Source of the DNA: Leidyana gryllorum EB-2025a
Taxonomy: Eukaryota; Protista; Apicomplexa
NCBI GenBank assembly: GCA_048772705.1
Contig: JBLWGC010000129.1
Coordinates: 1-36,111, forward strand
Direction of reading: 5' to 3'
DNA length: 36,111 nucleotides
Shown: positions 1 to 36,111 of the stretch, piece after piece
Numbering within the stretch: position 1 is the stretch's first letter
Layout: each line of letters starts with the position of its first letter
Translations under genes and position numbers: made by a program
The notes under the pieces: model-generated
Told to the model about the DNA's origin: nothing
The model's input: only the letters and a program-made list of their open reading frames with translations
Databases searched by the model: none

Positions 1-61
1 GGAATCGAACCCAGGACTTCTTCCACCCGAAGGAAGAATCATACCACTAGACCAAACAGCC
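1..61 (-). tRNA. trnP: tRNA-Pro(CGG), 3' end outside window
   Basis: rc GGCTGTTTGGTCTAGTGG...CTTCC-TT CGG GT-GGAAG...GGTTCGATTCC. Confidence 0.9.
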
Positions 62-149
62 GCCTGTCGGTCATGCAACCCGCTGAGGACAGTTTAGATA
101 GTGGTCATACTATGTTGAGAACCAACAAATGCGATGGGGTGTGCACAAG

Positions 150-222
150 GGGCGACTAGCTCAAATGGTAGAGCGCTCGCTTAGCATGCGAAGCGTACTG
201 GGATTGATGTCCAGGTCGTCTA
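150..222 (+). pseudogene. degenerate tRNA-Ala(AGC)
   Basis: Ala 5' half intact; T-loop GGATTGAT and 3' stem mutated. Confidence 0.8.
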
Positions 223-503
223 AACTCCGTAGTGCTGCAACTGCGGTATTTGACTACAGAGTTGAGAGCTTTCCAGGGTGCCCCGTATCCCTTCTATAGA
301 CGTTGGCACCGCCGTATGTGTGGAGGTTGCCTCAGAGCCCGGATCTCCGAATTTGTAGTTGACAACCACACGCTCTGCCAACTAAGATACAAAAGCCACT
401 GCCAATATTTCAGAGAGTGGTGGAGAGACTTGTGTTGCATGTGTCCAGTTGAGGGAGGGCTAGTCTGGATGGCTTTACCAACTCTTTTGGGAAGGACTGA
501 ATG

Positions 504-575
504 GGTTGCGTGGTGTAGTGGTTAGCACTGGAGACTCTGAATCTCCCGACCTGGGTTCGATTCCCGGCGCGACCT
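504..575 (+). tRNA. trnQ: tRNA-Gln(CTG)
   Basis: GGTTGCG...GGAGA-CT CTG AA-TCTCC...GGTTCGATTCC...CGCGACCT, intact. Confidence 0.95.
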
Positions 576-638
576 CGAAACTAGTGCTCACTATTTTGTG
601 AAACCTCGCCAATTCTCTTGGTCTGCGGGACCTTCCGT

Positions 639-1137
639 GCGGCCATCCTCTAGTGGTCACGACGTCTGCTTCACATGCAGCAGCTCCTGACTTCAATCCT
701 CGGTGGCTGGGGCTCGCAACTGGGCGAGAAGCAGGGGAGACAATCTTAAGCGGAACCATCTAAGTGTGCTCCGAGACCTGGAATCGAACCCGGGTCTTCC
801 GCCTGACAAGCGGAAATACTGACAACTATACTATCTCGAACGCTCTGGACATGCCGGCCTCCAACCCCAAAAGTCCTTCCATTTTGAGATTCCAAGGACA
901 GAAAACGCATGGAGCGGCGAGCCAACAATATCCCGGCAAGATGGCCGAGTGCTCGAAGGCCCTGTGTGCAGGGCACAGTCCGAAAGGCTGTGGGTTCGGA
1001 ACCCAGTCTTGTCAGCCATGGTATCGGCACTCGGTCAGCCACTGGGTGAAATAGGTCTTCCATGTTTTACGCATGGGCGGCTAGATCAGATGGTGGAGCG
1101 CTCGCTTTGCATGTGAGAGGTACTGGGATCGACAGCC
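639..1137. pseudogene. Decayed Val(CAC)+ 639-711, Asp(GTC)- 769-840, Leu+ 935-1014 and truncated Ala(TGC)+ 1075-1137
   Basis: Align to intact copies elsewhere in the window, with multiple stem and box mutations. Confidence 0.8.
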
Positions 1138-1220
1138 ATGCAACTTTGGCTGCAGTGAAACGACTGGCGCGTGGTCCAAAAATGTAAATGTTGATATTTC
1201 AATCTAGTCGAAAAGCCGCG

Positions 1221-1293
1221 GCCTACGTGGCGCAATGGATAGCGCGTTGGACTTCTAATCCAAAGGTTGCGAGTTCGAGTCTCGCCGTAGGTA
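1221..1293 (+). tRNA. trnR: tRNA-Arg(TCT)
   Basis: TTGGA-CT TCT AA-TCCAA; intact cloverleaf; only copy seen in the window. Confidence 0.95.
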
Positions 1294-1357
1294 GCCAAAT
1301 GCTCAACACTTTACTTCGATGATTTGGCTGACTAGCTGCCTTCGCTGAGGAATGTTG

Positions 1358-1587
1358 TCCACTGTAGTCTGAGTGGCTAGGATATGCGGCCTCACCCGCA
1401 AGCTCCGGGCTCAAGTCCGGCACTGGAAGTCAGTGGCTGAAGTCAGTGGAATACTTGGGCAAAGTGCCCAGCAATCTCCGGCAATAGTGTCTGATTCGTG
1501 ATCTTCGGCTTGCATTGCCTTCTTAGCTTGTGGCAGAGGATCCGCTTAGTAAGCGAAAGGTCGCCGGTTCGATTCCAGCAGAAGGCT
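1358..1587 (+). pseudogene. degenerate Glu (1358-1428) and Thr(AGT) (1517-1587)
   Basis: Anticodon-loop deletion in Glu; D-arm and anticodon-stem changes in Thr. Confidence 0.78.
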
Positions 1588-1786
1588 CGACTGCATCGAC
1601 TCGGCACCTGCAAAGCTTAAGTCTCTCAAGCTCCAATCATCGTAGGTGAGCCTCGTATCTCAGCCAGCAGAGGGTAAGTCTCTCAGCCACAAAGTCGCAG
1701 GACTGGCTGCTGCCAGTACCTGAGGCACCCACTAGCTCAACGCAGACTGCGGCCGAGTCTCATGGTGCTGAAGCTCTTTCCCAAGT

Positions 1787-1857
1787 GAATTTGTGGTCCA
1801 AGGGTAGGATGCGAGCTTCCCATGCTCGCAGCCCGGGTTCGAGTCCCGGCAGGTGCA
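1787..1857 (+). pseudogene. tRNA-Gly(CCC) with damaged acceptor stem
   Basis: CGAGC-TT CCC AT-GCTCG; 5' GAATTTG against 3' CAGGTGC. Confidence 0.8.
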
Positions 1858-1936
1858 GCCGATCGTACAGACTTGACCATGGCTGCAACGATATTTTCAA
1901 CATTTCAGGGCGAAGAGCAATGCACTTTGGACTGCT

Positions 1937-2008
1937 TGTCCGAGCCAGGAATCGAGCCTGGGTTTGCACGGCCACAACGTGCTGTCCTAACCACTAGACG
2001 ACTCGGAC
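1937..2008 (-). tRNA. trnH: tRNA-His(GTG)
   Basis: GCACG-TT GTG GC-CGTGC; A73, no encoded G-1; T-loop has C54. Confidence 0.88.
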
Positions 2009-3578: not shown

Positions 3579-4196
3579 TGTTGTAACCCCAAGTCGCTAC
3601 TCAAGGGGAACGAGGCCCAGTTCTCATCTCTGCATACTTTCGACCACAAGTCAGACTTAGAACCAAGTTAGTATTTTTGCCGACAAGTCTACCACGAATA
3701 TGTCGCACACGACGGCGCAAAACAAGAACTACGGCTTGTTCTACCAAGTGCAAAAGTTATCTTAGGCCGCCTCTTGCCTAGGCCGCCTCTTGCCTAGTCC
3801 AACTCTGACTTAGCCAACTTTGCTTGCGTGTGTCTCTCACTCTGGTGTCTCTCTCACTCCACCCATGTGCCAGTCGCTCGCACTCTTGCGGAGCCTCGCG
3901 CTGGACACACACGGTAGTTCTCCCCGACACCACACTCTGATCATTCATGCGAGTGTCTGCACAGTTACACTGTCGCAGAGAGTTCAGACCACTAGGGTGC
4001 ATTAGCCTTTACGCTTTAGTAGTAGTTGCTTTACGTTCGTTAATAATGCCTTTTCACCATCTTATACATGCCCCTATATAAGTGCCAAATATGTAGGGAA
4101 GTACCCAGATGGATGTTAATTCGATTGGAAATTTCATCAAGTCGAATTTGGCCACCCGATAGGAAGTTGACCATCAGGCAAACACGAACTACAACA
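3579..4196. mobile_element. Putative solo LTR (Ty1/copia-like termini)
   Basis: Longest tRNA-free island; begins TGTTGTA and ends TACAACA (7-bp inverted termini); TATA-like CTATATAA at ~4074; no matching TSD. Confidence 0.55.
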
Positions 4197-4197
4197 C

Positions 4198-7261: not shown

Positions 7262-7333
7262 AGGTCGCGCCGGGAATCGAAGCTAGGTCGGGAGATTTAG
7301 AGTCTCCAATGCTAACCACTACACCACGTAACC
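7262..7333 (-). pseudogene. Gln body with CTA (amber) anticodon, T-arm damaged
   Basis: rc GGAGA-CT CTA AA-TCTCC; T-stem CTAGC/CCCGG. Confidence 0.75.
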
Positions 7334-7771: not shown

Positions 7772-7843
7772 GGCTGTTTGGTCTAGTGGTATGATTCTTC
7801 CTTCGGGTGGAAGAAGTCCTGGGTTCGATTCCCAGAACAGCCC
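7772..7843 (+). tRNA. trnP: tRNA-Pro(CGG)
   Basis: Intact cloverleaf, C73. Confidence 0.94.
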
Positions 7844-7924
7844 CGTTGGTTGTCGGTTGACCCGACGCTCTATCTCATCTCAAGATGGTACGGCTCTCGT
7901 CCAAAGCTGCAGCTGAGGAAGTTG

Positions 7925-7996
7925 TCCACTGTAGTCTAAGTGGCTAGGTTATGCGGCTCTCACCCGTACATCCGGGTTCAAGACCCGGCAGTGGAA
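7925..7996 (+). tRNA. trnE: tRNA-Glu(CTC) variant
   Basis: TGCGG-CT CTC AC-CCGTA; D-stem change and 1-nt variable-loop deletion. Confidence 0.72.
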
Positions 7997-8064
7997 GCTA
8001 CTCGAGCAAAGTGCCTCAGTAATCCCCGTCAATAGTGACTGATTCTTGATCTTCGGCCTGGATT

Positions 8065-8136
8065 GCCTTCTTAGCTTAGGGGCAGAGCATTCGCTTAGTA
8101 AGCGAAAGGTCGCCGGTTCGATTCCGGCAGAAGGCT
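8065..8136 (+). tRNA. trnT: tRNA-Thr(AGT)
   Basis: TTCGC-TT AGT AA-GCGAA; intact. Confidence 0.94.
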
Positions 8137-8228
8137 CGACTGCATCGACTAGGCACCTGCAAGCGGTAAGTCTCTTAGCCACGAAGCCGCAGGTTTGGAA
8201 CCTGCCGGTACCTGAGGCACCCACAGGG

Positions 8229-8300
8229 GGCTGTTTGGTCTAGTGGTATGATTCTTCCTTCGGGTGGAAGAAGTCCTGGGTTCGATTCCCAGAACAGCCC
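8229..8300 (+). tRNA. trnP: tRNA-Pro(CGG)
   Basis: Identical to the 7772 copy. Confidence 0.94.
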
Positions 8301-8381
8301 CGTTGGTTGTCGGTTGACCCGACGCTCTATCTCATCTCAAGATGGTACGGCTCTCGTCCAAAGCTGCAGCTGAGGAAGTTG

Positions 8382-8453
8382 TCCACTGTAGTCTAAGTGG
8401 CTAGGTTATGCGGCTCTCACCCGTACATCCGGGTTCAAGACCCGGCAGTGGAA
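8382..8453 (+). tRNA. trnE: tRNA-Glu(CTC) variant
   Basis: Identical to the 7925 copy. Confidence 0.72.
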
Positions 8454-8521
8454 GCTACTCGAGCAAAGTGCCTCAGTAATCCCCGTCAATAGTGACTGAT
8501 TCTTGATCTTCGGCCTGGATT

Positions 8522-8593
8522 GCCTTCTTAGCTTAGGGGCAGAGCATTCGCTTAGTAAGCGAAAGGTCGCCGGTTCGATTCCGGCAGAAGGCT
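8522..8593 (+). tRNA. trnT: tRNA-Thr(AGT)
   Basis: Identical to the 8065 copy. Confidence 0.94.
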
Positions 8594-8685
8594 CGACTGC
8601 ATCGACTAGGCACCTGCAAGCGGTAAGTCTCTTAGCCACGAAGCCGCAGGTTTGGAACCTGCCGGTACCTGAGGCACCCACAGGG

Positions 8686-8757
8686 GGCTGTTTGGTCTAG
8701 TGGTATGATTCTTCCTTCGGGTGGAAGAAGTCCTGGGTTCGATTCCCAGAACAGCCC
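8686..8757 (+). tRNA. trnP: tRNA-Pro(CGG)
   Basis: Identical to the 7772 copy. Confidence 0.94.
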
Positions 8758-8838
8758 CGTTGGTTGTCGGTTGACCCGACGCTCTATCTCATCTCAAGAT
8801 GGTACGGCTCTCGTCCAAAGCTGCAGCTGAGGAAGTTG

Positions 8839-8910
8839 TCCACTGTAGTCTAAGTGGCTAGGTTATGCGGCTCTCACCCGTACATCCGGGTTCAAGACCC
8901 GGCAGTGGAA
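8839..8910 (+). tRNA. trnE: tRNA-Glu(CTC) variant
   Basis: Identical to the 7925 copy. Confidence 0.72.
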
Positions 8911-8978
8911 GCTACTCGAGCAAAGTGCCTCAGTAATCCCCGTCAATAGTGACTGATGCGTGATTCGCGGCTTGCATT

Positions 8979-9050
8979 GCCTTCTTAGCTTAGGGGCAGA
9001 GCATTCGCTTAGTAAGCGAAAGGTCGCCGGTTCGATTCCGGCAGAAGGCT
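8979..9050 (+). tRNA. trnT: tRNA-Thr(AGT)
   Basis: Intact. Confidence 0.94.
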
Positions 9051-11279: not shown

Positions 11280-11359
11280 TCCGGTGGGACGGAATCGAAC
11301 CGCCGACTACCTGATGCCAGCACTACAGTCAGATGCTCTACCAACTGAGCTACCCCCGG
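11280..11359 (-). tRNA. trnY: tRNA-Tyr(GTA) with 7-nt intron
   Basis: TCTGA-CT GTA G[TGCTGGC]A-TCAGG; C1-G72, A73. Confidence 0.88.
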
Positions 11360-15169: not shown

Positions 15170-15501
15170 CGGTCTGCAACATGGAAGAGGGAGCCGAAAT
15201 GCGATTCTTGAGATGTTAATTGCCTTGAGTGCGAAGTCTGCTAACGAGCTGGCTGCGTTGGTTCTAAAAACTGCTTATCTCATCGGGTCAACCGACAACC
15301 AAGAGGGCTGTTCTGGGAATCGAAACGAGGACTTCTTCCACCCGAAAGAAGAATCATATAACTAGACCAAACAGTCCGCTGTGGGTGCCTCAGGTACTGG
15401 CATTGTGGCTGAGAGACTTACGCTCTGCTGGCTGAGCTACGAGGCTCAGCAACGACGATCGGAGTTTGCGATAAGCTGCAGGTGCCTAGTCGATGCAGTC
15501 G

Positions 15502-15867: not shown

Positions 15868-15939
15868 GGTCTTGTAGCTCAGTCGGCAGAGCGTGTGGCT
15901 GTTAACCACAAAGTCGCAGGTTCGAAACCTGCAGGACCG
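15868..15939 (+). tRNA. trnN: tRNA-Asn(GTT) with 1-nt 3' deletion
   Basis: CCTGC-AGGACCG here against CCTGC-CAGGACCG in the 2643 copy. Confidence 0.75.
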
Positions 15940-16053
15940 TTTCAGGGGCACCCCAGACACTGACTGCCCTGCTCTGGCAATGGCACCTTTGGTCTGCGAC
16001 CCTTCAAAGATATAAGTTTATTTGGCACCCGCCACGTGCAGCCGTACGTACTT

Positions 16054-16126
16054 TGGACGATTTGGGTATCGATCCCAGTACCTCTCGCATGCGAAGCGAG
16101 CGCTCTAGCATCTGAGCTAGCCGCCC
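16054..16126 (-). pseudogene. degenerate tRNA-Ala(CGC)
   Basis: D-loop G lost; T-stem and acceptor mismatches. Confidence 0.75.
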
Positions 16127-16186
16127 ATCCGCTCTACATGGAAGACCTATTGCATCCAGTGGCTGACCGAGTGCCGATACAACGGC

Positions 16187-16266
16187 TGACCAGAGTGGGA
16201 TTCGAACCCACGCCCTTTCGGACTGCGACCCTAACACAGCGCCTTAGACCACTCGGCCATCTTGCC
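16187..16266 (-). tRNA. Leu body with AGG (Pro) anticodon
   Basis: rc CTGTG-TT AGG GT-CGCAG; A/B boxes, variable arm and A73 intact; A4.G69 mismatch. Confidence 0.75.
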
Positions 16267-16748
16267 GGAGTGTACTTGGCTCGCCACTTTACACGTTTTC
16301 TGTTCGTGAAGTCTCGAGAAGAAAGACTTTTGAGGTTGAAGACCCGGGCCCGATGCCCGTTTCGAAACAAGGTCGATTCCGCTTAAGATTGTCTCCTTTG
16401 GTTGCCGCTGGAAGTTGCGAGCTACAGCCACCGAGGATTGAACTCGGGATCGTCTGCGTGTGAAGCAGACGTCGTAACCACTAGACCATGGCTACACGCA
16501 TGGTACCCGCAGCCCAAGAGAAGTCGCGGAGTTTCAGGGAGTAGTGAGGATCAGTTCCAAGGTCGCGCCGGAGATCGAACCAGGTCGGAAGATTAAGAGT
16601 CTCCAGTGCTAAACACTACTTCACGCAACCCATTCAGTCCTTCCCAAAAAGGTTGGTAGAGCCATTCCGACTAGCGCTTCTTTAAGCAGTGGGCCCACAT
16701 ACGGCCGCGGTGAGTCCTTCTTTTCACCGCCTTCCATGGCTGTCTAGC

Positions 16749-16821
16749 GCCTCGGTAGCTCAGTTGGGAGAGCGCCAGACTGAAGATCTGGAAGTCCCGT
16801 GTTCGATCCACGGCCGAGGCA
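16749..16821 (+). tRNA. trnF: tRNA-Phe(GAA)
   Basis: Intact. Confidence 0.95.
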
Positions 16822-17404
16822 GAGAGGTTGTGAAATCTGGTGTCAGAACCCCCGCGCCGGTGCGAGCGTTCTGCCCCTCAGCTAACCAGGCAGGCCCTGT
16901 CTCGATCACATGAGGGTATGGCTGAGACCGGCTGGGATATGCGGCTTTCACCCACACGGTCCGGGTTCAAAGCCCGGCAGTGGAACTCCTTGGAGTGCTT
17001 CAGCAATCTCCCTCAACGGGGTGAGATGCGTAATTTCTTTGGCGGATTTCCTTCGTAGCTTAGGGGCAGAGCGTTTGCTTCGTAAGCGAGACGTCGGCTG
17101 CTCGATTTCGACAGTGCATCCATAGGCTCTCTAAACAGCGGCTGTCACCACGTACAAGATGCAGCAACATCGTGTCCTGCATCTGTGGTATAGTGATAGA
17201 ATGTCTCGTTGCTATCCGGACGGCCCGGGTTCGATTCCCTGCAGATCCGGAACCCACGCCTCAAACCGCTGTGGCAAATTGTCAGCGAGTCAAACACGTC
17301 GCTGACAAGCTTGGTCGGCACGAGCCCGGCGCATTCTGACACTTGATGTAACAATCCCCCCAGATAGATTCGAATATGGGTGACGCGGTGGCACGGCGGT
17401 GATC

Positions 17405-17478
17405 GCTCCCCTAGCTCAGCTGGTTAGAGCATCGGCCTTATGTGCCGAAGGTCGAGGGTTCGATCCCCCCGGGGAGCA
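17405..17478 (+). tRNA. trnI: tRNA-Ile(TAT), intronless
   Basis: TCGGC-CT TAT GT-GCCGA; GCTCCCC/GGGGAGC acceptor stem. Confidence 0.9.
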
Positions 17479-18430: not shown

Positions 18431-18502
18431 AGGTCGCGCCGGGAATCGAACCCAGGTCGGGAGATTCAAAGTCTCCAGTGCTAACCACTACACCACGCAA
18501 CC
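18431..18502 (-). tRNA. trnQ: tRNA-Gln(TTG)
   Basis: GGAGA-CT TTG AA-TCTCC; intact. Confidence 0.94.
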
Positions 18503-18775
18503 GATTTAGCCCTTCTCAAAGAGTTGATAGAGCCATCCGGACTAGACCTTCCCCACACATGCAAAACGGGTTTTTCTACTAACCTCCAAAATATTCAATT
18601 GGCTCTTGCAGCGCAGTGGGCAAAGCGTGTGATTGTTGAATACTAAGTCGCAGGTCCGCGGTCTCAGGCACCCTAGACCGTATTGCGATGCCAAAGTCTA
18701 TCCAAGGGCTACAAGGCACAATCAAAGGCTCTCAACTCGGTAAATACATAGCGGCAGGTGCAGCCGTACGAAGTT

Positions 18776-19007
18776 TGGACGACCTGGACATCGATCCCAT
18801 ACCTTTCGCATGCTAAGCGAGCGCTCTACCATCTGAGCCAGTCGCCCGACGTGCAGTCCCCATCGCATTTATCGGTTGTCAACATAGCATGACCACTCTC
18901 TCGACTCTACCCGCGGATTGCACCACCGACCAGTCAGCTGTTTGGTCTAGTGGTATGATCCTTCCTTAGGGTGGAAGGAGTGTTGGGTTCGATTCCCAGA
19001 ACAGCCC
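18776..19007. pseudogene. degenerate divergent pair: Ala(AGC)- and Pro(AGG)+
   Basis: Multiple stem changes; standard Ala-Pro spacer. Confidence 0.75.
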
Positions 19008-19082
19008 GCTTTGTTGTATCTTGACCCAACCTGCCTGGCAGCATGGTTCTGGGTTCGGGTGATTCTTCGGAGACAGTCGGGG

Positions 19083-19155: not shown

Positions 19156-19337
19156 GGGTCGGAATCGAAATCGCCGACAAACTCATCATGCTATCGTTTT
19201 GCATCTGTCGGGAATCGCACACGGGTTATCTTGATGGCAGCGAGAGACTCTTCCACTAGACCACAGATGCAGAACACGATCCTGTTGACTCTTGTACCTG
19301 GTGACAGCCATTCTTTATAAGCCTATCAATGCGTCAA

Positions 19338-19409
19338 AGCCTTCTGCCGGAATCGAGCCGGCGCCTTCTCGCTTACGAAGCGAACGCTCTGCCCCTAAGC
19401 TTCGAAGGC
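19338..19409 (-). pseudogene. degenerate tRNA-Thr(CGT)
   Basis: Loop TT CGT AA; U8 and T54 lost. Confidence 0.75.
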
Positions 19410-19485
19410 AATGTAAGTTGGAGATGACGAAACAGTCTCTATTGACGGAGATTACTGGAGCACTTTGCTCGAGTATTTCAATGGC

Positions 19486-19558
19486 TTCCACTGCCGGGAC
19501 TTGAACCCGGATCGTGCGGGTGAGAGCCGCATATCCTAGCCACTTAGACTACAGTGGA
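19486..19558 (-). tRNA. trnE: tRNA-Glu(CTC)
   Basis: Intact consensus copy. Confidence 0.95.
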
Positions 19559-19790
19559 CAAGTCCTCGAGTTTAGGCTTCGGCCGAGAGCCGAACCGTCT
19601 CGGAAAGATTCCACCATCAATACGACTGGAATTTGTTACCAAGTCCGAGCTTTCTTGCCGCCCCAACTCCGTCGGTAGAGCGCAAGACTTTTGAAGGGAG
19701 AACCGCGGGTTCGGGCGGCGCGAGCAGTCCTAGTAAAGCTTGCTGAACCGTATGTGAAGCCACTGGCCGCAAAATGCCAAGTTCGACAGC

Positions 19791-20473: not shown

Positions 20474-20545
20474 TCCGAGATAGTATAGTGGTTAGTATTT
20501 CCGCCTGTCACGCGGAAGACCCGGGTTCGATTCCCGGTCTCGGAG
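20474..20545 (+). tRNA. trnD: tRNA-Asp(GTC)
   Basis: Intact consensus copy. Confidence 0.95.
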
Positions 20546-20600
20546 CACAATTGATCTCGCTTAAGATTGTCTTTTTTGGTGCCCGCTGAAAGTTGCGAGC

Positions 20601-20673
20601 TACAGCCACCGAGGATCGAACTCGGGACCTTCTGCGTGTTAAGCAGACGTCGTAACCACTAGACCATGGCTGC
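20601..20673 (-). tRNA. trnV: tRNA-Val(AAC)
   Basis: Intact. Confidence 0.95.
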
Positions 20674-20964
20674 ATGGATGGTCCCCGCAGCCCAAGAGAA
20701 GTGGCGAAGCTTCAGGGAGTAGTGAGGACCAGTTCAAGGGTCGCGCCGGGATCGAACCCAGGTCGCAAAATCCAAAGTGTCGAGTGCTAACCACCAAGGA
20801 CGCAACCGGTTCAGCCCATCCCAGAAGAGTCGGACTAGCGCTTCCTCAACTGGACACATGCAACACGGGTCTTGTATACAGACCCCAGCGTCAAGAATTG
20901 GATTCGAGTCGGGCAAAAACCTCAGTTCAATCATTCAACCAGTTGCGCTCTCCCCGAATGCTAC

Positions 20965-21046
20965 CGACAAGGGTGAGATTCGAACTCACGCGGGTGGCAC
21001 CCAACGGCTTAGCAGGCCGCCGCCTTAACCACTCGGCCACCTTGCC
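20965..21046 (-). tRNA. trnS: tRNA-Ser(GCT)
   Basis: GCGGC-CT GCT AA-GCCGT, long variable arm, G73. Confidence 0.94.
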
Positions 21047-21231
21047 GACGACATCTCTTACTCGCTGGCACTTTTCACAACGGTTTGGGGTCCTAGTCAA
21101 GCTTGCTTAACCGTATGTGACATCACTGGCCGCAAAATGCCGAGTTCGACAGGTGGCAACTTGCCCGAGTGGTTAAGGGGGTAGACTAGAATGGGCCTGG
21201 CGTGGCACAATCAACCAGGTGCCATCTCCTG

Positions 21232-21302
21232 TGCATCTGCCGGGAATCGAACCCGGGTCGTCTCGATGACAACGAGACATTCTACCACTAGACCACAGAT
21301 GC
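21232..21302 (-). tRNA. Gly body with GTC (Asp) anticodon, otherwise identical to Gly-GCC
   Basis: rc TCTCG-TT GTC AT-CGAGA. Confidence 0.8.
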
Positions 21303-21605
21303 GTAATAACTTGTTGCGCTAGTCGCTCGGTGTGCAGACGCCACAGCATTTCGTGATTCTTCATAGCATAGTTGCACCACCATCCGTTCGGCTGTTTGGT
21401 CTAGTATGTTCCTTCCTTGGGTGGAAGGAGTCTGGGCTCGATTTCCAGAACAGCACGTCTTACAATTGTTGTCTCACTCCGCGTCTCTCCAAGGTCGGCT
21501 AAGATATGCGGCTCTTACCCCGTACAATCCCGCATGAAGTCTAGACAGCTGAGACAAAATCTGATTTGCATCAGTTGTGAGGGGCTAAAACCCGACCACT
21601 CGCCC

Positions 21606-21678
21606 AGACGCTACTGGGACTCGAGCCCACAATCCCCAGTTCCGTGGACCGACGCCACATCCATTGGGCCATACCGCC
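21606..21678 (-). pseudogene. degenerate tRNA-Arg(ACG)
   Basis: U33, T54 and stems altered. Confidence 0.75.
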
Positions 21679-21765
21679 GATCAACGGGGGCGTCAAATGA
21701 GAGTGTGTTGGGATCAAGCGTTGTCGATCCGGCAAGAGTTCCCATCCGAGAATCCAGAGACATAC

Positions 21766-21837
21766 TGTCCGAGCCAGGAATCGAGCCTGGGTTTGCACGG
21801 CCACAACGTGCTGTCCTAACCACTAGACGATTCGGAC
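21766..21837 (-). tRNA. trnH: tRNA-His(GTG)
   Basis: As the 1937 copy, with G7A. Confidence 0.83.
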
Positions 21838-22036
21838 AATCTTCAGGTGTGGGGCCACTCCTCGCCACATGACGGAATCGACAGTTGCTAACTTGCCCGA
21901 GTGAGGAACTAGTGCAGATCCAGCAGTTGTCGTGCGATATGATTGGAGGGGTCAGACACCAACTTACGCATGAATCCTGTGGTTGAGCTGATGCTATTTC
22001 CAGCATCAAACCCTCATATGGATCGACACAGGGGAA

Positions 22037-22108
22037 GCCTTCTTAGCTTAGAGGCAGAGCATTCGCTTTGTAAGCGAAAGGTCGCTGGTTCGATTGCGGC
22101 AGAAGGCT
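22037..22108 (+). pseudogene. degenerate tRNA-Thr(TGT)
   Basis: B-box TTCGATTG. Confidence 0.72.
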
Positions 22109-22369
22109 GGACTGCATCGACTGGGAAGCTACAAAGCTTGAGTGTTTCGAGCTCCAATCAGCCTAGCTGAGTCTGTTAGCTCCGTGGGCAGAGGATAAGT
22201 CTTCTAGCCACACAGTCGCAGGTTTGGAACCTGCAGTAGTGTGACGCACCCACAAGCTCAACGCAAACTCCGCCCGAGTCTCGGGTAGAAGTCCAAGGGT
22301 AGGATGCGAGCTTCCCATGCTTGGAGCCCGGGTTCGAGTCCCGGCAGTCTCGAATAAAAAACCCTTGCC

Positions 22370-22442
22370 GGCGCTATGGCCTAATGGATATGGCATCGGT
22401 CTACGGAACCGGGGATTCTGGGTTCGAGTCCCAGTAGCGTCT
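22370..22442 (+). tRNA. trnR: tRNA-Arg(ACG)
   Basis: Intact. Confidence 0.94.
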
Positions 22443-22649
22443 GGGAAAGTTGTGGGCTTGCAGCCCCTCACAACTGCTGCCACTCAGATTTTGTCTCAGC
22501 TGGTCTGGACTTCATTCGGGATTGTACGGGTGAAAGCCGCATATCCTAACCACTTGGACTACAGTTGACAAGCTCCCGAGCTGAGGCTTCGGATGAGAGC
22601 TGTACCATCTTGATCTGAGGTGGAGCGTCGGGTCAACCGACAACCAACG

Positions 22650-22721
22650 GGGCTGTTCTGGGAATCGAACCCAGGACTTCTTCCACCCGAAGGAAGAATC
22701 ATACCACTAGACCAAACAGCC
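22650..22721 (-). tRNA. trnP: tRNA-Pro(CGG)
   Basis: Intact. Confidence 0.94.
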
Positions 22722-22855
22722 GTCTGTCGGTCGTGCAACCCGGTGAGCACAGTCGCGAGAGTGGTCATACTATGTTGAGAATCAACAAAATGCGACGGGG
22801 TCTGCACAACAAAATGGAAGGACTCTTGGGGTTGGAGGCCGGCGTATCCAGAGCG

Positions 22856-23055
22856 TCCGGGATAGTATAGCGGTTAGGATTTCCGCCTACCACGCGGAGG
22901 ACCCCGGTTCGATTCCCGGTCTCGGAGCACACTTGGTTTCGCTTGAGATTCTCTCCTTTGGTTCTCGCTGAAAGTTGCGAGCTACAGCCACCAAGGATCG
23001 AACTCGGGAACTTCTGCGTGTGAAGCAGACGTCGTAAGCACTAGACCATTGCTGC
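22856..23055. pseudogene. degenerate Asp+ and Val(CAC)-
   Basis: Asp anticodon loop shortened; Val has several changes. Confidence 0.72.
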
Positions 23056-24926: not shown

Positions 24927-25391
24927 ATGGACAGGCTGCGCTGAGTTCGATTCCCAGAACCAGCCCGTTTTGCTCTCGATCGACCCGACACTCCACCTTT
25001 TTTAAGACGATACAGCTCTCCACCGAGGCTCCACTTCCCGGATCTTGTCCACTACAGTCTAAGTGGCCAGGTATGCGGCTCTCACCGGCACGCTTCAAGT
25101 TCGAGTAGGTCAATGCGATCCCAGTGAATTACTCCAGCATCGCCTTCTGCCCACCGGACCGCCGGACTGGAGCAGGCGTCACTGGAACTCCAGCACAGAA
25201 CCCCCACTTCGGTAAAACGATACCATATCCATCAGGCCATGGTGCCGGTTGGCAGGGGGAGTAAGCTGAGGTACCTGGGAGAAATAACACCCAAGCTTGC
25301 GGTGGGATAGAAACGAACCGCAAGAAATCCGATGCCACAACCATCCACAATGCGGGCGGAGGATCGCAACCATGTTTAGGCTGATGACTGA

Positions 25392-25463
25392 AGCCTCCTG
25401 TCGGAATCGAACCAGCGACTTTTCGCTTATAAAGCGCATGCTGTACCCCTAAGCTAAGGAGAC
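25392..25463 (-). pseudogene. degenerate Thr(TGT) body with loop TT TAT AA
   Basis: Multiple changes including G35A. Confidence 0.72.
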
Positions 25464-25527
25464 ATTCCCTGTCTCGACCCATATGAGTTTTTCATGCTGG
25501 GAATTGCATTAGTTCCACCACATCGCA

Positions 25528-25609
25528 CGACAACTGCTGGATTTAAACCAGCGCGGGCCACGCCCAGTAGATTTCTAGTCTACCCCCTTAACCACTCGGG
25601 CAAGTTGCC
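25528..25609 (-). tRNA. trnS: tRNA-Ser(AGA), C56T
   Basis: T-loop TTTAAAT; otherwise intact. Confidence 0.75.
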
Positions 25610-26155
25610 ACCTGTCGAACTCGGCATTTTGCGGCCAATGGTTTCACATACGGTTCAGCAAGCTTGAGTTCTCGCGCTGCCCGAACCCGCGGTCTCCCCT
25701 CAAAAGTCTTGCGCTCTATCGACGGACTTGGGGCGGCAACGAAGCTCGGACTTAGTAACAAATTCCATTCGTATTGATCGTGGAATCTTGGGCCTTCTTC
25801 GGGTACAGGGCGAATCTGTATCAGAGATCCACTCACTTGGTCACGCGCGGGCTCCAGTCGCGGACTCGGAAGTTATCAGGCTCACGCTCCAACCGACTGG
25901 AATATGTGACCGCTTCAGAGTTGAGGTGAACAGTCACTAGCCGAAGGAGCGAGTGATGTGCACGGCAAAACCCCCATGACTGGGATTGAAGCGGCCGCTC
26001 AGACCTTCGTCCACCCCGCCAAACAGTCATTCCGAGAGCCAAATACTGACATCGAGAAGGGGGTGTACCTACACCACTGACAGTTCGCACGGAACCCCGA
26101 TGGAAGGTGCGCTGGTCCGGATGGCTGTACCGACTCTTTTGGGATGGGCTGAGCC

Positions 26156-26361
26156 GGTTGCGTCGTGTAGTGGTTAGCACTGGAGACTCTGAATCTCCCG
26201 ACCTGGGTTCGATTCGCCGCGCGACCTTGGAACTGGTCCTCACTACTCCCTGAAACTTCGCCATGTCTTGGGCTGCGGAGACCATCCGTGCAGCAATGGT
26301 CTAGTGGTTACGACGTCTGCTTCGCACGCAGAAGTCCCGATTTCGATCCTCGGTGGTTGTA
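26156..26361 (+). pseudogene. degenerate Gln(CTG) 26156-26227 and Val body with CGC loop 26290-26361
   Basis: T-arm damage in both; mirrored at 28511-28722. Confidence 0.75.
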
Positions 26362-26579
26362 GCTCGCAACTTTCAGCGAGAACCGAAGCAGAGAATCTCA
26401 AGCGAAACCACCTGCGTTTCGAGACCGGCAATCGAACCCGGGTCTTCCGCGTGACAGGCGGAGGCACTAACCACCATACTAACTCGGACCCTCTGAACAC
26501 GCCGGCCTCCAATCCCAGAAGTCTTTCTATTTCGGCTCACGGACAGAAAACGTGTAAAGTGGCGAGCCAAGAACGCTCC

Positions 26580-26825: not shown

Positions 26826-26905
26826 CCGGGGGTAGCTCAGTTGGTAGAGCATCTGACTGTAGTACTGGCATCAGATAGTCGGCGGTTCGATTCCGTCCCA
26901 CCGGA
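26826..26905 (+). tRNA. trnY: tRNA-Tyr(GTA) with 7-nt intron
   Basis: TCTGA-CT GTA G[TACTGGC]A-TCAGA. Confidence 0.9.
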
Positions 26906-28112: not shown

Positions 28113-28192
28113 TCCGGTGGGACGGAATCGAACCGCCGACTATCTGATGCCAGCACTACAGTCAGATGCTCTACCAACTGAGCTACCCCCGG
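28113..28192 (-). tRNA. trnY: tRNA-Tyr(GTA) with 7-nt intron
   Basis: Intron TGCTGGC. Confidence 0.9.
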
Positions 28193-29200: not shown

Positions 29201-29272
29201 AGCCTTCTGCCGGAATCGAACCGGCGACTTCTCGCTTACGAAGCGAACGCTCTGCCCCTAAACTAAGAAGGC
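29201..29272 (-). tRNA. trnT: tRNA-Thr(CGT)
   Basis: TTCGC-TT CGT AA-GCGAG. Confidence 0.87.
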
Positions 29273-30002: not shown

Positions 30003-30395
30003 GCAGCCATGGTCTAGTGCTTACGACGTCTGCTTAACACGCAGAAGTTCCCGAGTTCGATCGTCGGTGGCTGTAGATCGCAACTTTCAGCGAGAATCTC
30101 AAGCGAAACCAACTGTGCTCCGAGACCGGGAATCGAACCCGGGTCTTCCGCGTGACAGGCGGAAATACTAACCACTATACTACCTCGGACGCTCCGATCA
30201 CGCCGGCCTCCAACCCCAAAGTTGGCCGAGTTGTCTAAGGCGCTCTGCTCAGACCGCAGTCCGAAAGGGCGAGGATCTGGTGTTGAGCCTTTCGAACCCC
30301 GGAGCAGTTGGACGGCCGGGGGTAGCTCAGTTGGTAGAGCACCTGACTGTAGTGCTGGCATGAGATAGTCGGCGGTTCGATTCCGCCCCACCGGA
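30003..30395. pseudogene. degenerate Val(AAC)+, near-intact Asp(GTC)- (~30118-30189), Leu fragment and Tyr+ 30316-30395
   Basis: Standard cassette order with lesions. Confidence 0.75.
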
Positions 30396-31074: not shown

Positions 31075-31549
31075 ACGGCGATCATTACCAAAAATAGGCT
31101 GGAAAAGGCCACAGTAGATTCGAGTCTCCATCCGTATATCCGGTTGCATGCACCGAAGTATTCGGCTGTTGTTGTGGATCCTTCCTTGGGGTGGAAGGAG
31201 TCCTGGGTTCGATTCCCAGAACAGCCCTCTTGGTCGTCGGTTGACCCGACGGGACAAGTTGCCCTCAGAACCAACACAGCATTTCATTAGCCCACTTCGG
31301 TAGGGCAGTCAGGGCAACTAACATCTGGAGAATTGCATTTCGGCTATTTCTTCCATGTTGCAGACTGAGCAATGTAGCTCAGTGAAAAGTGTTGAGCTCA
31401 TAATCCAAAGGTCGTGTCGGGAATCGAATCCAGGTCGGGAGATTCAAAATCTCCACAGCTGACCACTGTGCCGTAGGGGGGCAGGCTGAACAGGCGGCTG
31501 TCTGGTCTGGTGGTATGATTCTTCCTCGGGTGGAAGAACATTGTAATTG

Positions 31550-31621
31550 GGTCTTGTAGCTCAGTCGGCAGAGCGTGTGGCTGTTAACCACAAAGTCGCA
31601 GGTTCGAAACCTGCAGGACCG
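31550..31621 (+). tRNA. trnN: tRNA-Asn(GTT) with 1-nt 3' deletion
   Basis: Copy of 15868. Confidence 0.75.
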
Positions 31622-31868
31622 TTTCAGGGGCACCCCAGACACTGACTGCCCTGCTCTGGCAATGGCACCTTTGGTCTGCGACCCTTCAAAGATATAAGTT
31701 TATTTGGCACCCGCCACGTGCAGCCGTACGTACTTTGGACGATTTGGGTATCGATCCCAGTACCTCTCGCATGCGAAGCGAGCGCTCTAGCATCTGAGCT
31801 AGCCGCCCATCCGCTCTACATGGAAGACCTATTGCATCCAGTGGCTGACCGAGTGCCGATACAACGGC

Positions 31869-31948
31869 TGACCAGAGTGGGATTCGAACCCACGCCCTTT
31901 CGGACTGCGACCCTAACACAGCGCCTTAGACCACTCGGCCATCTTGCC
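31869..31948 (-). tRNA. Leu body with AGG (Pro) anticodon, second copy
   Basis: Identical to 16187-16266. Confidence 0.75.
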
Positions 31949-32430
31949 GGAGTGTACTTGGCTCGCCACTTTACACGTTTTCTGTTCGTGAAGTCTCGAG
32001 AAGAAAGACTTTTGAGGTTGAAGACCCGGGCCCGATGCCCGTTTCGAAACAAGGTCGATTCCGCTTAAGATTGTCTCTTTTGGTTGCCGCTGGAAGTTGC
32101 GAGCTACAGCTACCGAGGATTGAACTCGGGATCGTCTGCGTGTGAAGCAGACGTCGTAACCACTAGACCATGGCTACACGCATGGTACCCGCAGCCCAAG
32201 AGAAGTCGCGGAGTTTCAGGGAGTAGTGAGGATCAGTTCCAAGGTCGCGCCGGAGATCGAACCAGGTCGGAAGATTAAGAGTCTCCAGTGCTAAACACTA
32301 CTTCACGCAACCCATTCAGTCCTTCCCAAAAAGGTTGGTAGAGCCATTCCGACTAGCGCTTCTTTAAGCAGTGGGCCCACATACGGCCGCGGTGAGTCCT
32401 TCTTTTCACCGCCTTCCATGGCTGTCTAGC

Positions 32431-32503
32431 GCCTCGGTAGCTCAGTTGGGAGAGCGCCAGACTGAAGATCTGGAAGTCCCGTGTTCGATCCACGGCCGAG
32501 GCA
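32431..32503 (+). tRNA. trnF: tRNA-Phe(GAA)
   Basis: Intact. Confidence 0.95.
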
Positions 32504-33086
32504 GAGAGGTTGTGAAATCTGGTGTCAGAACCCCCGCGCCGGTGCGAGCGTTCTGCCCCTCAGCTAACCAGGCAGGCCCTGTCTCGATCACATGAGGGTA
32601 TGGCTGAGACCGGCTGGGATATGCGGCTTTCACCCACACGGTCCGGGTTCAAGGCCCGGCAGTGGAACTCCTTGGAGTGCTTCAGCAATCTCCCTCAACG
32701 AGGTGAGATGCGTAATTTCTTTGGCGGATTTCCTTCGTAGCTTAGGGGCAGAGCGTTTGCTTCGTAAGCGAGACGTCGGCTGCTCGATTTCGACAGTGCA
32801 TCCATAGGCTCTCTAAACAGCGGCTGTCACCACGTACAAGATGCAGCAACATCGTGTCCTGCATCTGTGGTATAGTGATAGAATGTCTCGTTGCTATCCG
32901 GACGGCCCGGGTTCGATTCCCTGCAGATCCGGAACCCACGCCTCAAACCGCTGTGGCAAATTGTCAGCGAGTCAAACACGTCGCTGACAAGCTTGGTCGG
33001 CACGAGCCCGGCGCATCCTGACACTTGATGTAACAATCCCCCCAGATAGATTCGAATATGGGTGACGCGGTGGCACGGCGGTGATC

Positions 33087-33160
33087 GCTCCCCTAGCTCA
33101 GCTGGTTAGAGCATCGGCCTTATGTGCCGAAGGTCGAGGGTTCGATCCCCCCGGGGAGCA
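33087..33160 (+). tRNA. trnI: tRNA-Ile(TAT)
   Basis: Copy of 17405. Confidence 0.9.
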
Positions 33161-33548
33161 AATCAGTTCAATGACAGCCGAACGCGACCCTGAGTGCATA
33201 GCAGGAGACCTCGGACGCTACAGTCATAAGCCCAAAACTCTCGCACTGAGTTCCACTACTCCAGCGTCGGATATCATGAAGGAAGCCAAATGTGGTTCTT
33301 GAGATGCGGACTGATTTTACACCTATGAGGGCAGGCCGACCAGGGGGCTGTTTGGTCTGCAGGTATGATTTTTCCTCGCTTGGAAGAAGATTGCAACTGG
33401 GTCTTGTAGCTCATCGGCAAAGCGTGTAGCTGTTCACCACAAAGTCGCAGTTTCGAAGCCTAGCAGTGCCGGGAGCTGCGATATGCGACGCTCTCTTAGA
33501 GGTCGCAACTCTATATTTACCTACCGGCAGGTGCCGCCCTACTGAGTT

Positions 33549-33621
33549 TGGACGACCTGGGTATCGATCCCAGTACCTCTCGCATGCAAAGCGAGCGCTC
33601 TACTATCTGAGCTAGCCGCCC
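33549..33621 (-). tRNA. trnA: tRNA-Ala(TGC), D-loop G18A
   Basis: Copy of 17867. Confidence 0.78.
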
Positions 33622-33976
33622 ATCCGCTCTACATGGAAGACCTATTGCATCCAGTGGCTGACTGAGCCGATACAACGGCTGACAAGCGTGGCTTCGAACC
33701 CACGCCCTTTCGGACTGCGGCCTGAACACAGCGCCTTAGACCACTCGGCCATCTTGCCGCAGTGTTGTTGGTTCGTCCCTCCACGCGTTTCTTGTCCGTG
33801 AGCCGAAATAGAAAGACTTCTGGGATTGGAGGCCGGCTTGTTCAAAGGGTCCGAGTTAGTATAGTGGTTAGTGTCTCCGCCTGTCACGCGGAAGACCCGG
33901 GTTCGATTCCCGGCCTCGAAACGCAGGTGGTTTCGCTTAAGATTCTGTCCTTTGGTTGTCGCTGAAAGTTGCGAGC

Positions 33977-34049
33977 TACAGCTACCGAGGATCGAACTCG
34001 GGACCTTCTGCGTGTGAAGCAGACGTCGTAACCACTAGACCATGGCTGC
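33977..34049 (-). tRNA. trnV: tRNA-Val(CAC)
   Basis: Copy of 18295. Confidence 0.85.
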
Positions 34050-34112
34050 ACGGCAAGTCCCGCAGACCAAAGCAAGTGGGGAGGTTTCACGAAGTAGTGA
34101 GGACTAGTTTCA

Positions 34113-34184
34113 AGGTCGCGCCGGGAATCGAACCCAGGTCGGGAGATTCAAAGTCTCCAGTGCTAACCACTACACCACGCAACC
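34113..34184 (-). tRNA. trnQ: tRNA-Gln(TTG)
   Basis: Copy of 18431. Confidence 0.94.
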
Positions 34185-34792
34185 GATTTAGCCCTTCTCA
34201 AAGAGTTGATAGAGCCATCCGGACTAGACCTTCCCCACACATGCAAAACGGGTTTTTCTACTAACCTCCAAAATATTCAATTGGCTCTTGCAGCGCAGTG
34301 GGCAAAGCGTGTGATTGTTGAATACTAAGTCGCAGGTCCGCGGTCTCAGGCACCCTAGACCGTATTGCGATGCCAAAGTCTATCCAAGGGCTACAAGGCA
34401 CAATCAAAGGCTCTCAACTCGGTAAATACATAGCGGCAGGTGCAGCCGTACGAAGTTTGGACGACCTGGACATCGATCCCATACCTTTCGCATGCTAAGC
34501 GAGCGCTCTACCATCTGAGCCAGTCGCCCGACGTGCAGTCCCCATCGCATTTATCGGTTGTCAACATAGCATGACCACTCTCTCGACTCTACCCGCGGAT
34601 TGCACCACCGACCAGTCAGCTGTTTGGTCTAGTGGTATGATCCTTCCTTAGGGTGGAAGGAGTGTTGGGTTCGATTCCCAGAACAGCCCGCTTTGTTGTA
34701 TCTTGACCCAACCACTAGAGGATGGCCGCACGGAAGGTCCCGCAGACCAAGAGAATTGGCGAGGTTTCACAAAATAGTGAGCACTAGTTTCG

Positions 34793-34864
34793 AGGTCGCG
34801 CCGGGAATCGAACCCAGGTCGGGAGATTCAGAGTCTCCAGTGCTAACCACTACACCACGCAACC
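34793..34864 (-). tRNA. trnQ: tRNA-Gln(CTG)
   Basis: Inverted copy of 504-575. Confidence 0.95.
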
Positions 34865-35306
34865 CATTCAGTCCTTCCCAAAAGAGTTGGTAAAGCCATC
34901 CAGACTAGCCCTCCCTCAACTGGACACATGCAACACAAGTCTCTCCACCACTCTCTGAAATATTGGCAGTGGCTTTTGTATCTTAGTTGGCAGAGCGTGT
35001 GGTTGTCAACTACAAATTCGGAGATCCGGGCTCTGAGGCAACCTCCACACATACGGCGGTGCCAACGTCTATAGAAGGGATACGGGGCACCCTGGAAAGC
35101 TCTCAACTCTGTAGTCAAATACCGCAGTTGCAGCACTACGGAGTTTAGACGACCTGGACATCAATCCCAGTACGCTTCGCATGCTAAGCGACCGCTCTAC
35201 CATTTGAGCTAGTCGCCCCTTGTGCACACCCCATCGCATTTGTTGGTTCTCAACATAGTATGACCACTATCTAAACTGTCCTCAGCGGGTTGCATGACCG
35301 ACAGGC

Positions 35307-35378
35307 GGCTGTTTGGTCTAGTGGTATGATTCTTCCTTCGGGTGGAAGAAGTCCTGGGTTCGATTCCCAGAACAGCCC
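35307..35378 (+). tRNA. trnP: tRNA-Pro(CGG)
   Basis: Intact. Confidence 0.94.
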
Positions 35379-35624
35379 CGTTGGTTGTCGGTTGACCCGA
35401 CGCTCCATCTCATCTCAAGATGGTATGGCTTTCGTCCAAAGCTGCAGTTGATGAAGTTGCCAAGTGTAGTCTAAGTGGCTAGGATATGCGGCTCTCACCC
35501 ACACGATTCGGGCTCAAGTCCCGGCAGTGGAAATCCAGCAGTTGTCGTGCGATGTGGTTGGAGGGGTCGGACACCAACTCAAGCTTGAATCCCTGGAATG
35601 GTGGGAAAACAATCATGTGTCTTC

Positions 35625-35695
35625 TGCATGTGCCGGGAATCGAACCCGGGTCGTCTCGATGGCAGCGAGACATTCTACCACTAGACCACAGATGC
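35625..35695 (-). tRNA. trnG: tRNA-Gly(GCC) variant
   Basis: Loop CT GCC AT; one acceptor mismatch. Confidence 0.8.
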
Positions 35696-35910
35696 AGAAC
35701 ACGATCCTGTTGACTCTTGTACCTGGTGACAGCCATTCTTTATAAGCCTATCAATGCGTCAAAGCCTTCTGCCGGAATCGAGCCGGCGCCTTCTCGCTTA
35801 CGAAGCGAACGCTCTGCCCCTAAGCTTCGAAGGCAATGTAAGTTGGAGATGACGAAACAGTCTCTATTGACGGAGATTACTGGAGCACTTTGCTCGAGTA
35901 TTTCAATGGC

Positions 35911-35983
35911 TTCCACTGCCGGGACTTGAACCCGGATCGTGCGGGTGAGAGCCGCAAATCCTAGCCACTTAGACTACAGTGGA
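35911..35983 (-). tRNA. trnE: tRNA-Glu(CTC)
   Basis: Copy of 19486 with one change. Confidence 0.88.
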
Positions 35984-36111
35984 CAAGCCCTCGAGTTTAG
36001 GCTTCGGCCGAGAGCCGAACCGTCTCGGAAAGATTCCACCATCAATACGACTGGAATTTGTTACCAAGTCCGAGCTTTCTTGCCGCCCCAACTCCGTCGG
36101 TAGAGCGCAAG

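Follow-up and report, generated by a model that had tools for sequence, protein, structure and literature searches.

A non-tandem field of tRNA genes in a gregarine-like apicomplexan that likely turns over by recombination between dispersed tRNA copies

The stretch of DNA analysed here (the window, 36,111 nt, contig C129) raises the question of how tRNA genes of many families come to share a locus in which their order keeps changing. The window contains 238 tRNA-derived segments from 28 families, distributed over both strands, and 62 of them are structurally intact. This count takes in decayed copies; ARAGORN called 143 tRNA genes, and Rfam matches numbered 134. Once the decayed copies are counted, tRNA-derived segments make up 43% of the bases, which bears out the share of about 40% given in the original prediction. 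Protein-coding content was rejected, as the 43 open reading frames of 100-188 amino acids overlap tRNA genes. The window is a single contig out of a nuclear field of tRNA genes, multi-megabase in size, that belongs to a gregarine-like apicomplexan. Extrapolation from motif counts, which may include haplotype redundancy, puts this field at about 2.5 Mb and about 16,000 segments within a 15.5-Mb genome. By the same extrapolation, working and dead genes together occupy roughly one sixth of the assembled genome, above the 10% that marks the Entamoeba type. The gregarine-like affinity of the genome is suggested by its HSP70, for which the best named matches of normal length were Gregarina and Protomagalhaensia (77%), with other alveolates at 75-76%. 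Look-ups of exact protein sequences gave no match.

Junctions and adjacencies were surveyed in a sample of 161 kb, or about 6% of the field. This sample displayed 170 types of signed adjacency, among them Glu-Thr (49 occurrences), Leu-Asp and Ala-Pro (48 each), Asp-Val (46), Val-Gln (39), Pro-Glu (27), Gly-Ser (23), Thr-iMet (18), Pro-iMet (16) and Ser-Phe (9). Cassettes thus recur in changing order and orientation, as had been proposed, and multi-isotype sub-clusters in varied order, a feature of the fission yeast type, are present. The Leu-Asp-Val-Gln cassette was found, whole or partial and in both orientations, at all 13 sites where it had been reported, including a complete copy at 17998-18502 and a copy reversed to Gln-Val-Asp-Leu at 504-1014. 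A regular tandem array was rejected, in agreement with the earlier reading: in addition to the 170 adjacency types, the only sizeable tandem repeat of the window is a Pro-Glu-Thr(-dead Asn) unit of 457 bp, present 2.8 times at 7772-9050 on the forward strand. Its core is 100% identical from nucleotide 1 of Pro (7772/8229), and its exit crossover lies at 8951-8957, in the Glu-Thr spacer. No short tandem repeat spacers were found between the tRNA genes of the window. The window also holds a solo LTR (TG...CA) at 3579-4196, whose flanks do not match; a 95% copy of it in contig C61 has a 5-bp target-site duplication and an empty site in C175.

The ends of young duplicates provided insights into how this order changes. 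In the 161-kb sample, 26 of 71 such ends lie at the far edge of an in-register tRNA common to both copies, against an expectation of 12% (p=8e-8), and the same position is taken by 11 of the 21 ends of copies at least 99% identical. The predicted enrichment of junctions at tRNA genes is therefore above chance. These ends are balanced between the two sides of the gene (12 at the 5' edge, 14 at the 3' edge), and simulated random joins placed 13.8% at tRNA edges, with overlaps of at least 40 bp in 1.75%. Among 62 junctions with two parents, a count that leaves out nine whose donor runs off a contig end, 47 overlap in homology that contains tRNA and none in spacer only; the remaining 15 are microhomology or blunt joins. 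Where the overlap is a single gene, it holds the whole gene in 20 of 25 cases (5.9 expected). In 34 of the 46 junction rows tested, left-parent alleles give way to right-parent alleles with at most one discordant site, although the roles of parent and recombinant are putative for most junctions. SINE-like or retroposed tRNAs were rejected as a source of the copies, given that the duplicated units are multi-gene, mixed-strand DNA of 0.3-6 kb, that the edges are balanced (12:14) and that A4 downstream is at chance level.

Several of these exchanges can be followed within the window. A segment of 3.2 kb (15868-19031, forward strand), which also has a copy in C61, was duplicated at 31550-34713 in the same orientation (99.8% identity, core from nucleotide 1 of Asn at 15868/31550). 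The parents of the junction at 31537-31621 (forward strand) have only this Asn gene in common, and the crossover falls at 31550-31563, within Asn nucleotides 1-14. Likewise, the Pro gene is the sole homology common to both parents of the junction at 15305-15379 (reverse strand, 75-bp overlap). A young copy (99.5%) of 19253-19686 begins at nucleotide 18 of Gly and runs from 35678 to 36111 (forward strand), where it leaves the contig; its crossover interval, at the 5' end of the Gly copy in a Gly-Thr-Glu homology tract (19253-19284), is marked by 12 left-parent followed by 13 right-parent sites. Another crossover interval lies inside a Thr gene at 29209-29228 (reverse strand), with two 99.8% parents in C61. 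The segment between two direct Asp-Val copies (20474-23055) is present in C61 both undeleted and in a joined, deleted form that switches inside Val. Finally, positions 1-657 (forward strand), which end at nucleotide 19 of a decayed Val, have an inverted young copy at 34711-35367 (reverse strand, 99.8%). There, a spacer 24 nt behind a Pro gene is joined to the D-loop of the decayed Val over a microhomology of 3 bp (34711-34713). The four junctions named in the original prediction thus all lie at the bases given for them, but the one at 657/34711 is a microhomology join of a Val copy to spacer, and hence of a different class from the other three.

Collectively, these observations support the proposal that tRNA genes act as portable homology through non-allelic recombination, with same-family genes standing in register in the junction overlaps and parents switching cleanly. 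Every tRNA family occurs in many neighbourhoods and in both orientations, so that genes of 71-84 bp and multi-gene cassettes alike provide dispersed homology. We consider it likely that the field turns over by ectopic homologous recombination between these dispersed tRNA copies and cassettes. Young segments of 0.3-6 kb are seen to switch parent inside common homology, and these switches have produced new neighbours, deletions, tandem copies and inversions, while about a quarter of the junctions rely instead on microhomologies of 0-7 bp or are LTR ends. The exchanges themselves may be unequal crossovers, single-strand annealing or template switching, all of which would leave an identical footprint.

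The original prediction had also cast tRNA genes as fragile sites. The data do not support this: of the non-homologous ends, 13 lie inside tRNAs and 31 in spacers, which is no enrichment (null share 42.5%, p=0.09), and crossovers within multi-gene homology show no preference for tRNAs (55% in tRNA against 57% expected, p=0.58). Both results show where exchanges lie, and not where the initiating breaks fell. Gene order would thus change through recombination between copies of one tRNA gene, and not through breakage inside genes at a rate above chance. It is still conceivable, if on balance unlikely, that tRNA genes occupied by Pol III are the break sites, through fork pausing and R-loops at unterminated head-on genes, and that homology merely resolves the breaks. 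Such breakage is known in yeast (PMC7990762, PMC2652664); before meeting a first T4, transcripts of 73% of the intact genes would cross another copy, and those of 67% an antisense copy; and overlaps of a single gene make up 25 of 47, against 42% of the available homology (p=0.07). Both fragile-site results speak against it, as does the state of the junction genes, several of which are dead and which as a group are intact no more often than other full-length copies (p=0.38). Breakage of this kind would be compatible with recombination between tRNA copies, as its upstream step. Much less probable is that the mosaic is largely an artefact of assembly or library, made of chimeras, unpurged haplotypes or strains of a simpler array. 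Indeed, 62% of the window has a copy at least 99% identical elsewhere, the field is split over many small contigs, and the three youngest junctions of the window (15305, 31537 and 34711) do not recur in the sample. However, copies range from 70 to 100% identity, and recurrence was seen for 49 of 67 homologous junction forms, with all three forms recurring in copies less than 99% identical in 15 cases (the recurrence and crossover-position tallies used a junction list that still included the nine with incomplete donors). An independent metagenome contig also displays a similar mixed, decaying layout. The size of the field could be overestimated through such an artefact, but the pattern cannot have arisen from it.

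Recombination between copies is accompanied by extensive decay. Only 283 of 1040 copies are structurally intact, about 73% being damaged or partial, in line with the birth-and-death amplification that had been proposed. The youngest pairs have diverged nearly as much in tRNA as in spacer (ratio 0.88, p=0.39), whereas in old pairs the ratio is about 0.5. Stem transitions that preserve or break pairing are equally common (69:70), so that selection on individual copies is not directly seen. Selective retention of A and B boxes was rejected, since their invariant positions prove as variable as those of stems and loops. Position 35 or 36 is changed in 104 of 821 full copies, 91 of these in otherwise damaged genes, and the unusual anticodons seen (an amber Gln, a Pro on a Leu body and an Asp on a Gly body) were read as decay of redundant copies. 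Meanwhile, the master sequences of the 28 families are canonical cloverleaves, and a contig from a relative carries three intact genes 93-97% identical to masters amid unalignable spacers. Single copies therefore decay near-neutrally while the masters stay canonical. Selection may act on the pool, keeping enough intact genes per isotype, and not on each copy, probably aided by conversion between gene bodies. Oligo-T terminators are not above chance: T4 occurs within 20 nt in 6% of cases against 4.7% in shuffled sequence, at a median distance of 350 nt, and genome-wide it lies within 8 nt at 64 of 5178 B-box sites. Pol III probably transcribes the field without adjacent T-runs, and tRNAs would then be cut from precursors that are long or read-through.

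Does such a field supply the tRNA of the cell? An exact-pattern search of the assembly found no terminated dispersed iMet or Phe gene outside the field, and the primer-binding sites of young gypsy retrotransposons show matches of 11 and 14 nt to field iMet plus CCA, which suggests that the field is probably the main tRNA source. Three dispersed terminated genes (Cys, Gln and Gly) do exist, which leaves room for a conventional set that the exact patterns failed to pick up or that the assembly lacks. That the field is mostly silent, satellite-like DNA, with a small dispersed set making the tRNA and conversion alone homogenising gene bodies, seems improbable to us. It would agree with the near-neutral decay, the absence of structural bias among variants, the chance level of terminators and the fact that, of 151 Cys genes, just the dispersed one has a terminator. 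The mere three dispersed terminated genes found, iMet and Phe not among them, the canonical masters conserved in a relative and the retrotransposon primer sites all argue against it.

The chromosomal setting of the field offers only suggestive evidence of a further role. On contig C38, an 11-bp satellite is followed by young chromodomain gypsy elements and then by the field, which also occupies the first 5 kb of the gene-rich contig C2, an end of a contig and not of a chromosome. Reading at base level covered a single boundary of the field. No canonical telomere repeat was found in the assembly. Speculatively, the field may lie in repeat-rich regions of heterochromatin type. It is rather unlikely that a chromosomal job (pericentromeric or subtelomeric cap, boundary, or TFIIIC/condensin anchor) is what mainly maintains it, with tRNA supply secondary. 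The neighbours on C38, the position on C2, the missing telomere repeat and a copy number far in excess of the 14-231 genes of related apicomplexans (PMC9250747) would fit such a job, for which Entamoeba chromosome ends and fission yeast centromeres are precedents, but A and B boxes that vary like the rest of the gene would not. A broader conjecture, which we regard as doubtful, is that gregarines of this lineage make most of their tRNA from a terminator-less, self-recombining field read as long precursors, and that this field doubles as centromeric or chromosome-end chromatin.

These findings have implications beyond this genome. Thousands of non-tandem copies of all isotypes within 15.5 Mb add to Entamoeba a second case with a different architecture. 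In the field, nature has also left a record of recombination on homologies of 70-100 bp that can be counted. The field allows the tRNA gene as homology to be separated from the tRNA gene as fragile site, two roles that breakpoint studies usually blur. The absent terminators make Pol III termination and pre-tRNA processing directly testable in this lineage, and the field is a candidate for a gregarine centromere or chromosome end.

We found no paper describing a non-tandem, all-isotype field of this kind. The tRNA-STR arrays of Entamoeba comprise 25-28 homogeneous tandem units of 1-5 genes with STR spacers and no clear pseudogenes (PMC2652664; bioRxiv 10.64898/2026.07.06.736064), whereas this field has neither repeat unit nor STRs, mixes isotypes on both strands in 170 adjacency types and is about 73% damaged. 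The Tyr-Tyr-Ser array of Arabidopsis, for which unequal crossing-over is the model (PMC2886086), and the human 1q23 tRNA VNTR (PMC4041453) also change the copy number of tRNA gene units, but with a fixed head-to-tail unit, whose sole counterpart here is the 457-bp stretch. The number of tRNA copies normally rises with genome size (PMC9858662). Gregarina niphandrodes resembles this organism in genome size and GC content (13.9 Mb, 53.8% GC; PMC9250747), and its HSP70 is 77% identical; tRNA genes number 231 in its draft, 14 in Porospora, 45 in Plasmodium and Cryptosporidium and 150 in Toxoplasma (PMC9250747, Table 1), against thousands in the field, although draft assemblies could have collapsed such a field. 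The centromeric clusters of Schizosaccharomyces are similar in that sub-clusters of 2-3 different tRNA genes recur in them, variously combined and oriented and close to LTRs and repeats (PMC6538654), but they consist of tens of intact genes flanking CENP-A domains, in contrast to thousands of mostly decayed copies without preserved A and B boxes. In budding yeast, tRNA genes and solo LTRs likewise supply the short dispersed homology found at rearrangement breakpoints, among them those of inversions between genes in opposite orientation (PMC7990762, PMC5911963). What is there a rare event among dispersed genes is in this field the dominant, repeated mode, countable and on a megabase scale.

The window, which makes up the entire contig C129, is a mosaic of structurally intact and decayed tRNA gene copies of mixed isotypes on both strands. 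ARAGORN called 143 tRNA genes in it and Rfam 134. From 644 calls on five contigs holding 161 kb of this field, we derived 28 family masters, each the canonical sequence of one tRNA family. These are canonical cloverleaves that together represent all 20 amino acids and initiator Met. Annotation with the masters yielded 238 segments in the window, equal to 43% of its bases, and 1045 in the 161-kb sample. Intact copies, defined as lacking indels, broken pairs or box changes, made up 62 of 236 in the window and 283 of 1040 in the sample. The sample contained 170 signed adjacency types with balanced strands, and the sole real tandem repeat was a 457-bp unit present 2.8 times. The original prediction of a mosaic tRNA field rather than a regular tandem array is thus confirmed, as are the positions of Leu-Asp-Val-Gln and the other recurring cassettes. 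Four Tyr(GTA) copies (11280-11359, 26826-26905, 28113-28192 and 30316-30395) carry a 7-nt intron 3′ of position 37, which is very short among eukaryotic tRNA introns. Anticodon variants also occur: amber on a Gln body (7262-7333), Pro on a Leu body (16187-16266) and Asp on a near-perfect Gly body (21232-21302).

The ends of recent duplications provided insights into how this mosaic is assembled. We considered near-identical duplicate cores of at least 250 bp, excluding contig ends and merging repeated views of one event, and scored ends lying at most 10 bp from the far edge of a tRNA of one family that both copies share in register. At ≥96% identity, 26 of 71 ends fell at such shared edges (12 at 5′ and 14 at 3′ edges) versus 12% under a uniform expectation (p=8e-8) and 13.8% under simulated random joins; at ≥99% identity the count was 11 of 21 (p=8e-6). 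A 5-bp margin left the result unchanged. The remaining ends comprised 13 inside tRNA and 31 in spacers, with no intragenic excess (p=0.09, the trend being towards depletion).

Junctions for which both parents could be compared displayed the same dependence on tRNA. After dropping nine cases whose donor ran off its contig, 62 unique junctions were left. The parents overlapped in one tRNA gene at 25 of these, in multi-gene cassettes at 22, and by less than 30 bp at 15 (three of them LTR ends); none of the 62 had a spacer-only overlap of 30 bp or more. Random joining gives overlaps of at least 40 bp in 1.75% of cases. The whole gene was contained in 20 of the 25 single-gene overlaps, against 5.9 expected, and none of 2000 shuffles reached this value. 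Relative to their share of available homology, single-gene overlaps were in slight excess (p=0.07), with detection biased towards them. Informative sites mostly indicated a single parent switch, as at 31550-31563 (Asn nt 1-14), 29209-29228 (inside Thr), 19253-19284 (Gly 5′ end) and 8951-8957 (spacer).

It had been proposed that tRNA genes drive these rearrangements either as portable homology or as fragile sites. The first part of this proposal stands, since junctions overlap in shared tRNA. The second found no support: the remaining duplicate ends showed no excess inside the genes, within multi-gene overlaps the switch lay in tRNA in 55% of cases versus 57% expected (p=0.58), and the proportion of intact genes at junctions was no higher than among other full copies (p=0.38). 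Fork stalling is possible because the initiating break may be distant from the point of exchange. A position about 24 nt behind Pro genes (window 5734, 7866, 10958, 19030, 22627 and 35401), where a short inverted repeat ends, is a frequent endpoint of older alignments and is also used by the microhomology join at 34711; it may be a recurrent break point or a single ancient junction.

One-off chimeras cannot explain this pattern, because at 15 junctions all three forms recur in copies less than 99% identical. Homologous junction forms recurred elsewhere in the sample for 49 of 67 junctions, both counts coming from the list before the nine off-contig donors were removed. The three youngest junctions of the window (15305, 31537 and 34711) had no second occurrence in the 161-kb sample. 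An independent metagenome contig from a relative (JGI Ga0116231_10140136, 1426 bp) has a similar mixed, decaying and unterminated layout. Its intact genes (Pro, Phe and Glu) share 93-97% identity with the field masters and are accompanied by a partial Arg as well as several fragments; the spacers show no resemblance to those of the field, and T4 does not occur within 60 nt.

Mutations accumulate in single copies with little constraint, whereas the pool as a whole remains near the canonical masters. The ratio of tRNA to spacer divergence fell from 0.88 among the youngest pairs (p=0.39) through 0.78 at 92-97% identity to about 0.5 among older ones. Values were similar for boxes (0.54), stems (0.48) and loops (0.56), with no sign in these data of preferential retention of the TFIIIC boxes alone, and stem transitions kept or broke pairing in a 69:70 ratio. 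Anticodon positions 35-36 had the weakest protection (0.78). Wobble position 34 differed between duplicates 1.4-3.9 times as often as spacers on all contigs, in line with conversion that swaps isoacceptors or with tolerated change. We infer that selection acts at the level of the pool, together with conversion.

T4 terminators lie near field genes at about chance level. Only 6% of intact genes had a T4 within 20 nt, versus 4.7% after shuffling, and the median distance to T4 was 350 nt; 73% of predicted transcripts would run into another copy and 67% into an antisense one. Genes lacking a T4 close by are known among human tRNA genes (PMC3141230), but are not known to be the rule for a whole set. 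Genome-wide, 64 of 5,178 B-box sites had a T4 within 8 nt, three of which belong to isolated genes (Cys, Gln and Gly) far inside large contigs (C104:807078, C202:192630 and C230:1499803; T4-T5). The isolated Cys gene, whose T arm and acceptor stem deviate from the field master, is the only one of 151 Cys genes with a T4 within 25 nt; conventional terminated genes are therefore present in this organism. Searches with exact patterns for dispersed, terminated genes of initiator-Met or Phe came up empty, and the primer-binding sites of two young gypsy elements are complementary, over 11 and 14 nt, to the field initiator-Met with CCA added; both observations provide indirect evidence that the field probably makes tRNA.

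The field extends well beyond the window. Three further contigs and part of C38 have equal tRNA density (C61, C175, C166), and an exact-match search for a B-box motif gave 5,178 sites genome-wide (control 66; sample 325). Extrapolation puts the field at about 2.5 Mb with some 16,000 segments, some 4,400 of them intact genes, and the initiator-Met and noisier Cys motifs give 2.2 and 4.9 Mb, figures that unpurged haplotypes could inflate. Related apicomplexans have 14-231 tRNA genes (PMC9250747). The assembly is eukaryotic (15.5 Mb, 237 contigs). Its HSP70 has its best named normal-length matches in Gregarina niphandrodes and Protomagalhaensia (77%; other alveolates 75-76%), affinities that are compatible with a gregarine.

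The field is attached to the nuclear genome, as it fills the first 5 kb of the gene-rich contig C2. On C38, a diverged 11-bp satellite gives way to a nest of Ty3/gypsy elements that encode chromodomain integrases and whose LTR pairs are 99-100% identical (C38:1-19700); this nest, in which two primer-binding sites match the field initiator-Met, directly abuts the field. Such a location would fit heterochromatin-type regions, and does not in itself identify a centromere or chromosome end. The whole assembly contained no triple TT(A/T)AGGG telomere repeat, even allowing one mismatch. Also on C38, a 1.4-kb retrotransposon gag-protease fragment (24994-26432) is joined to the field at Ala nt 56. A solo LTR in the window (3579-4196) has no target-site duplication here but has one in its C61 copy, possibly because two LTR copies recombined or a deletion occurred beside it.

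The field has the defining properties of neither a fixed-unit array nor SINEs, and it matches Entamoeba arrays in scale but not in what defines them. Our literature search found no description of a comparable field in a gregarine. Its layout is similar to that of fission-yeast centromeric sub-clusters, and its working principle is the one known from yeast, namely ectopic recombination between tRNA genes.
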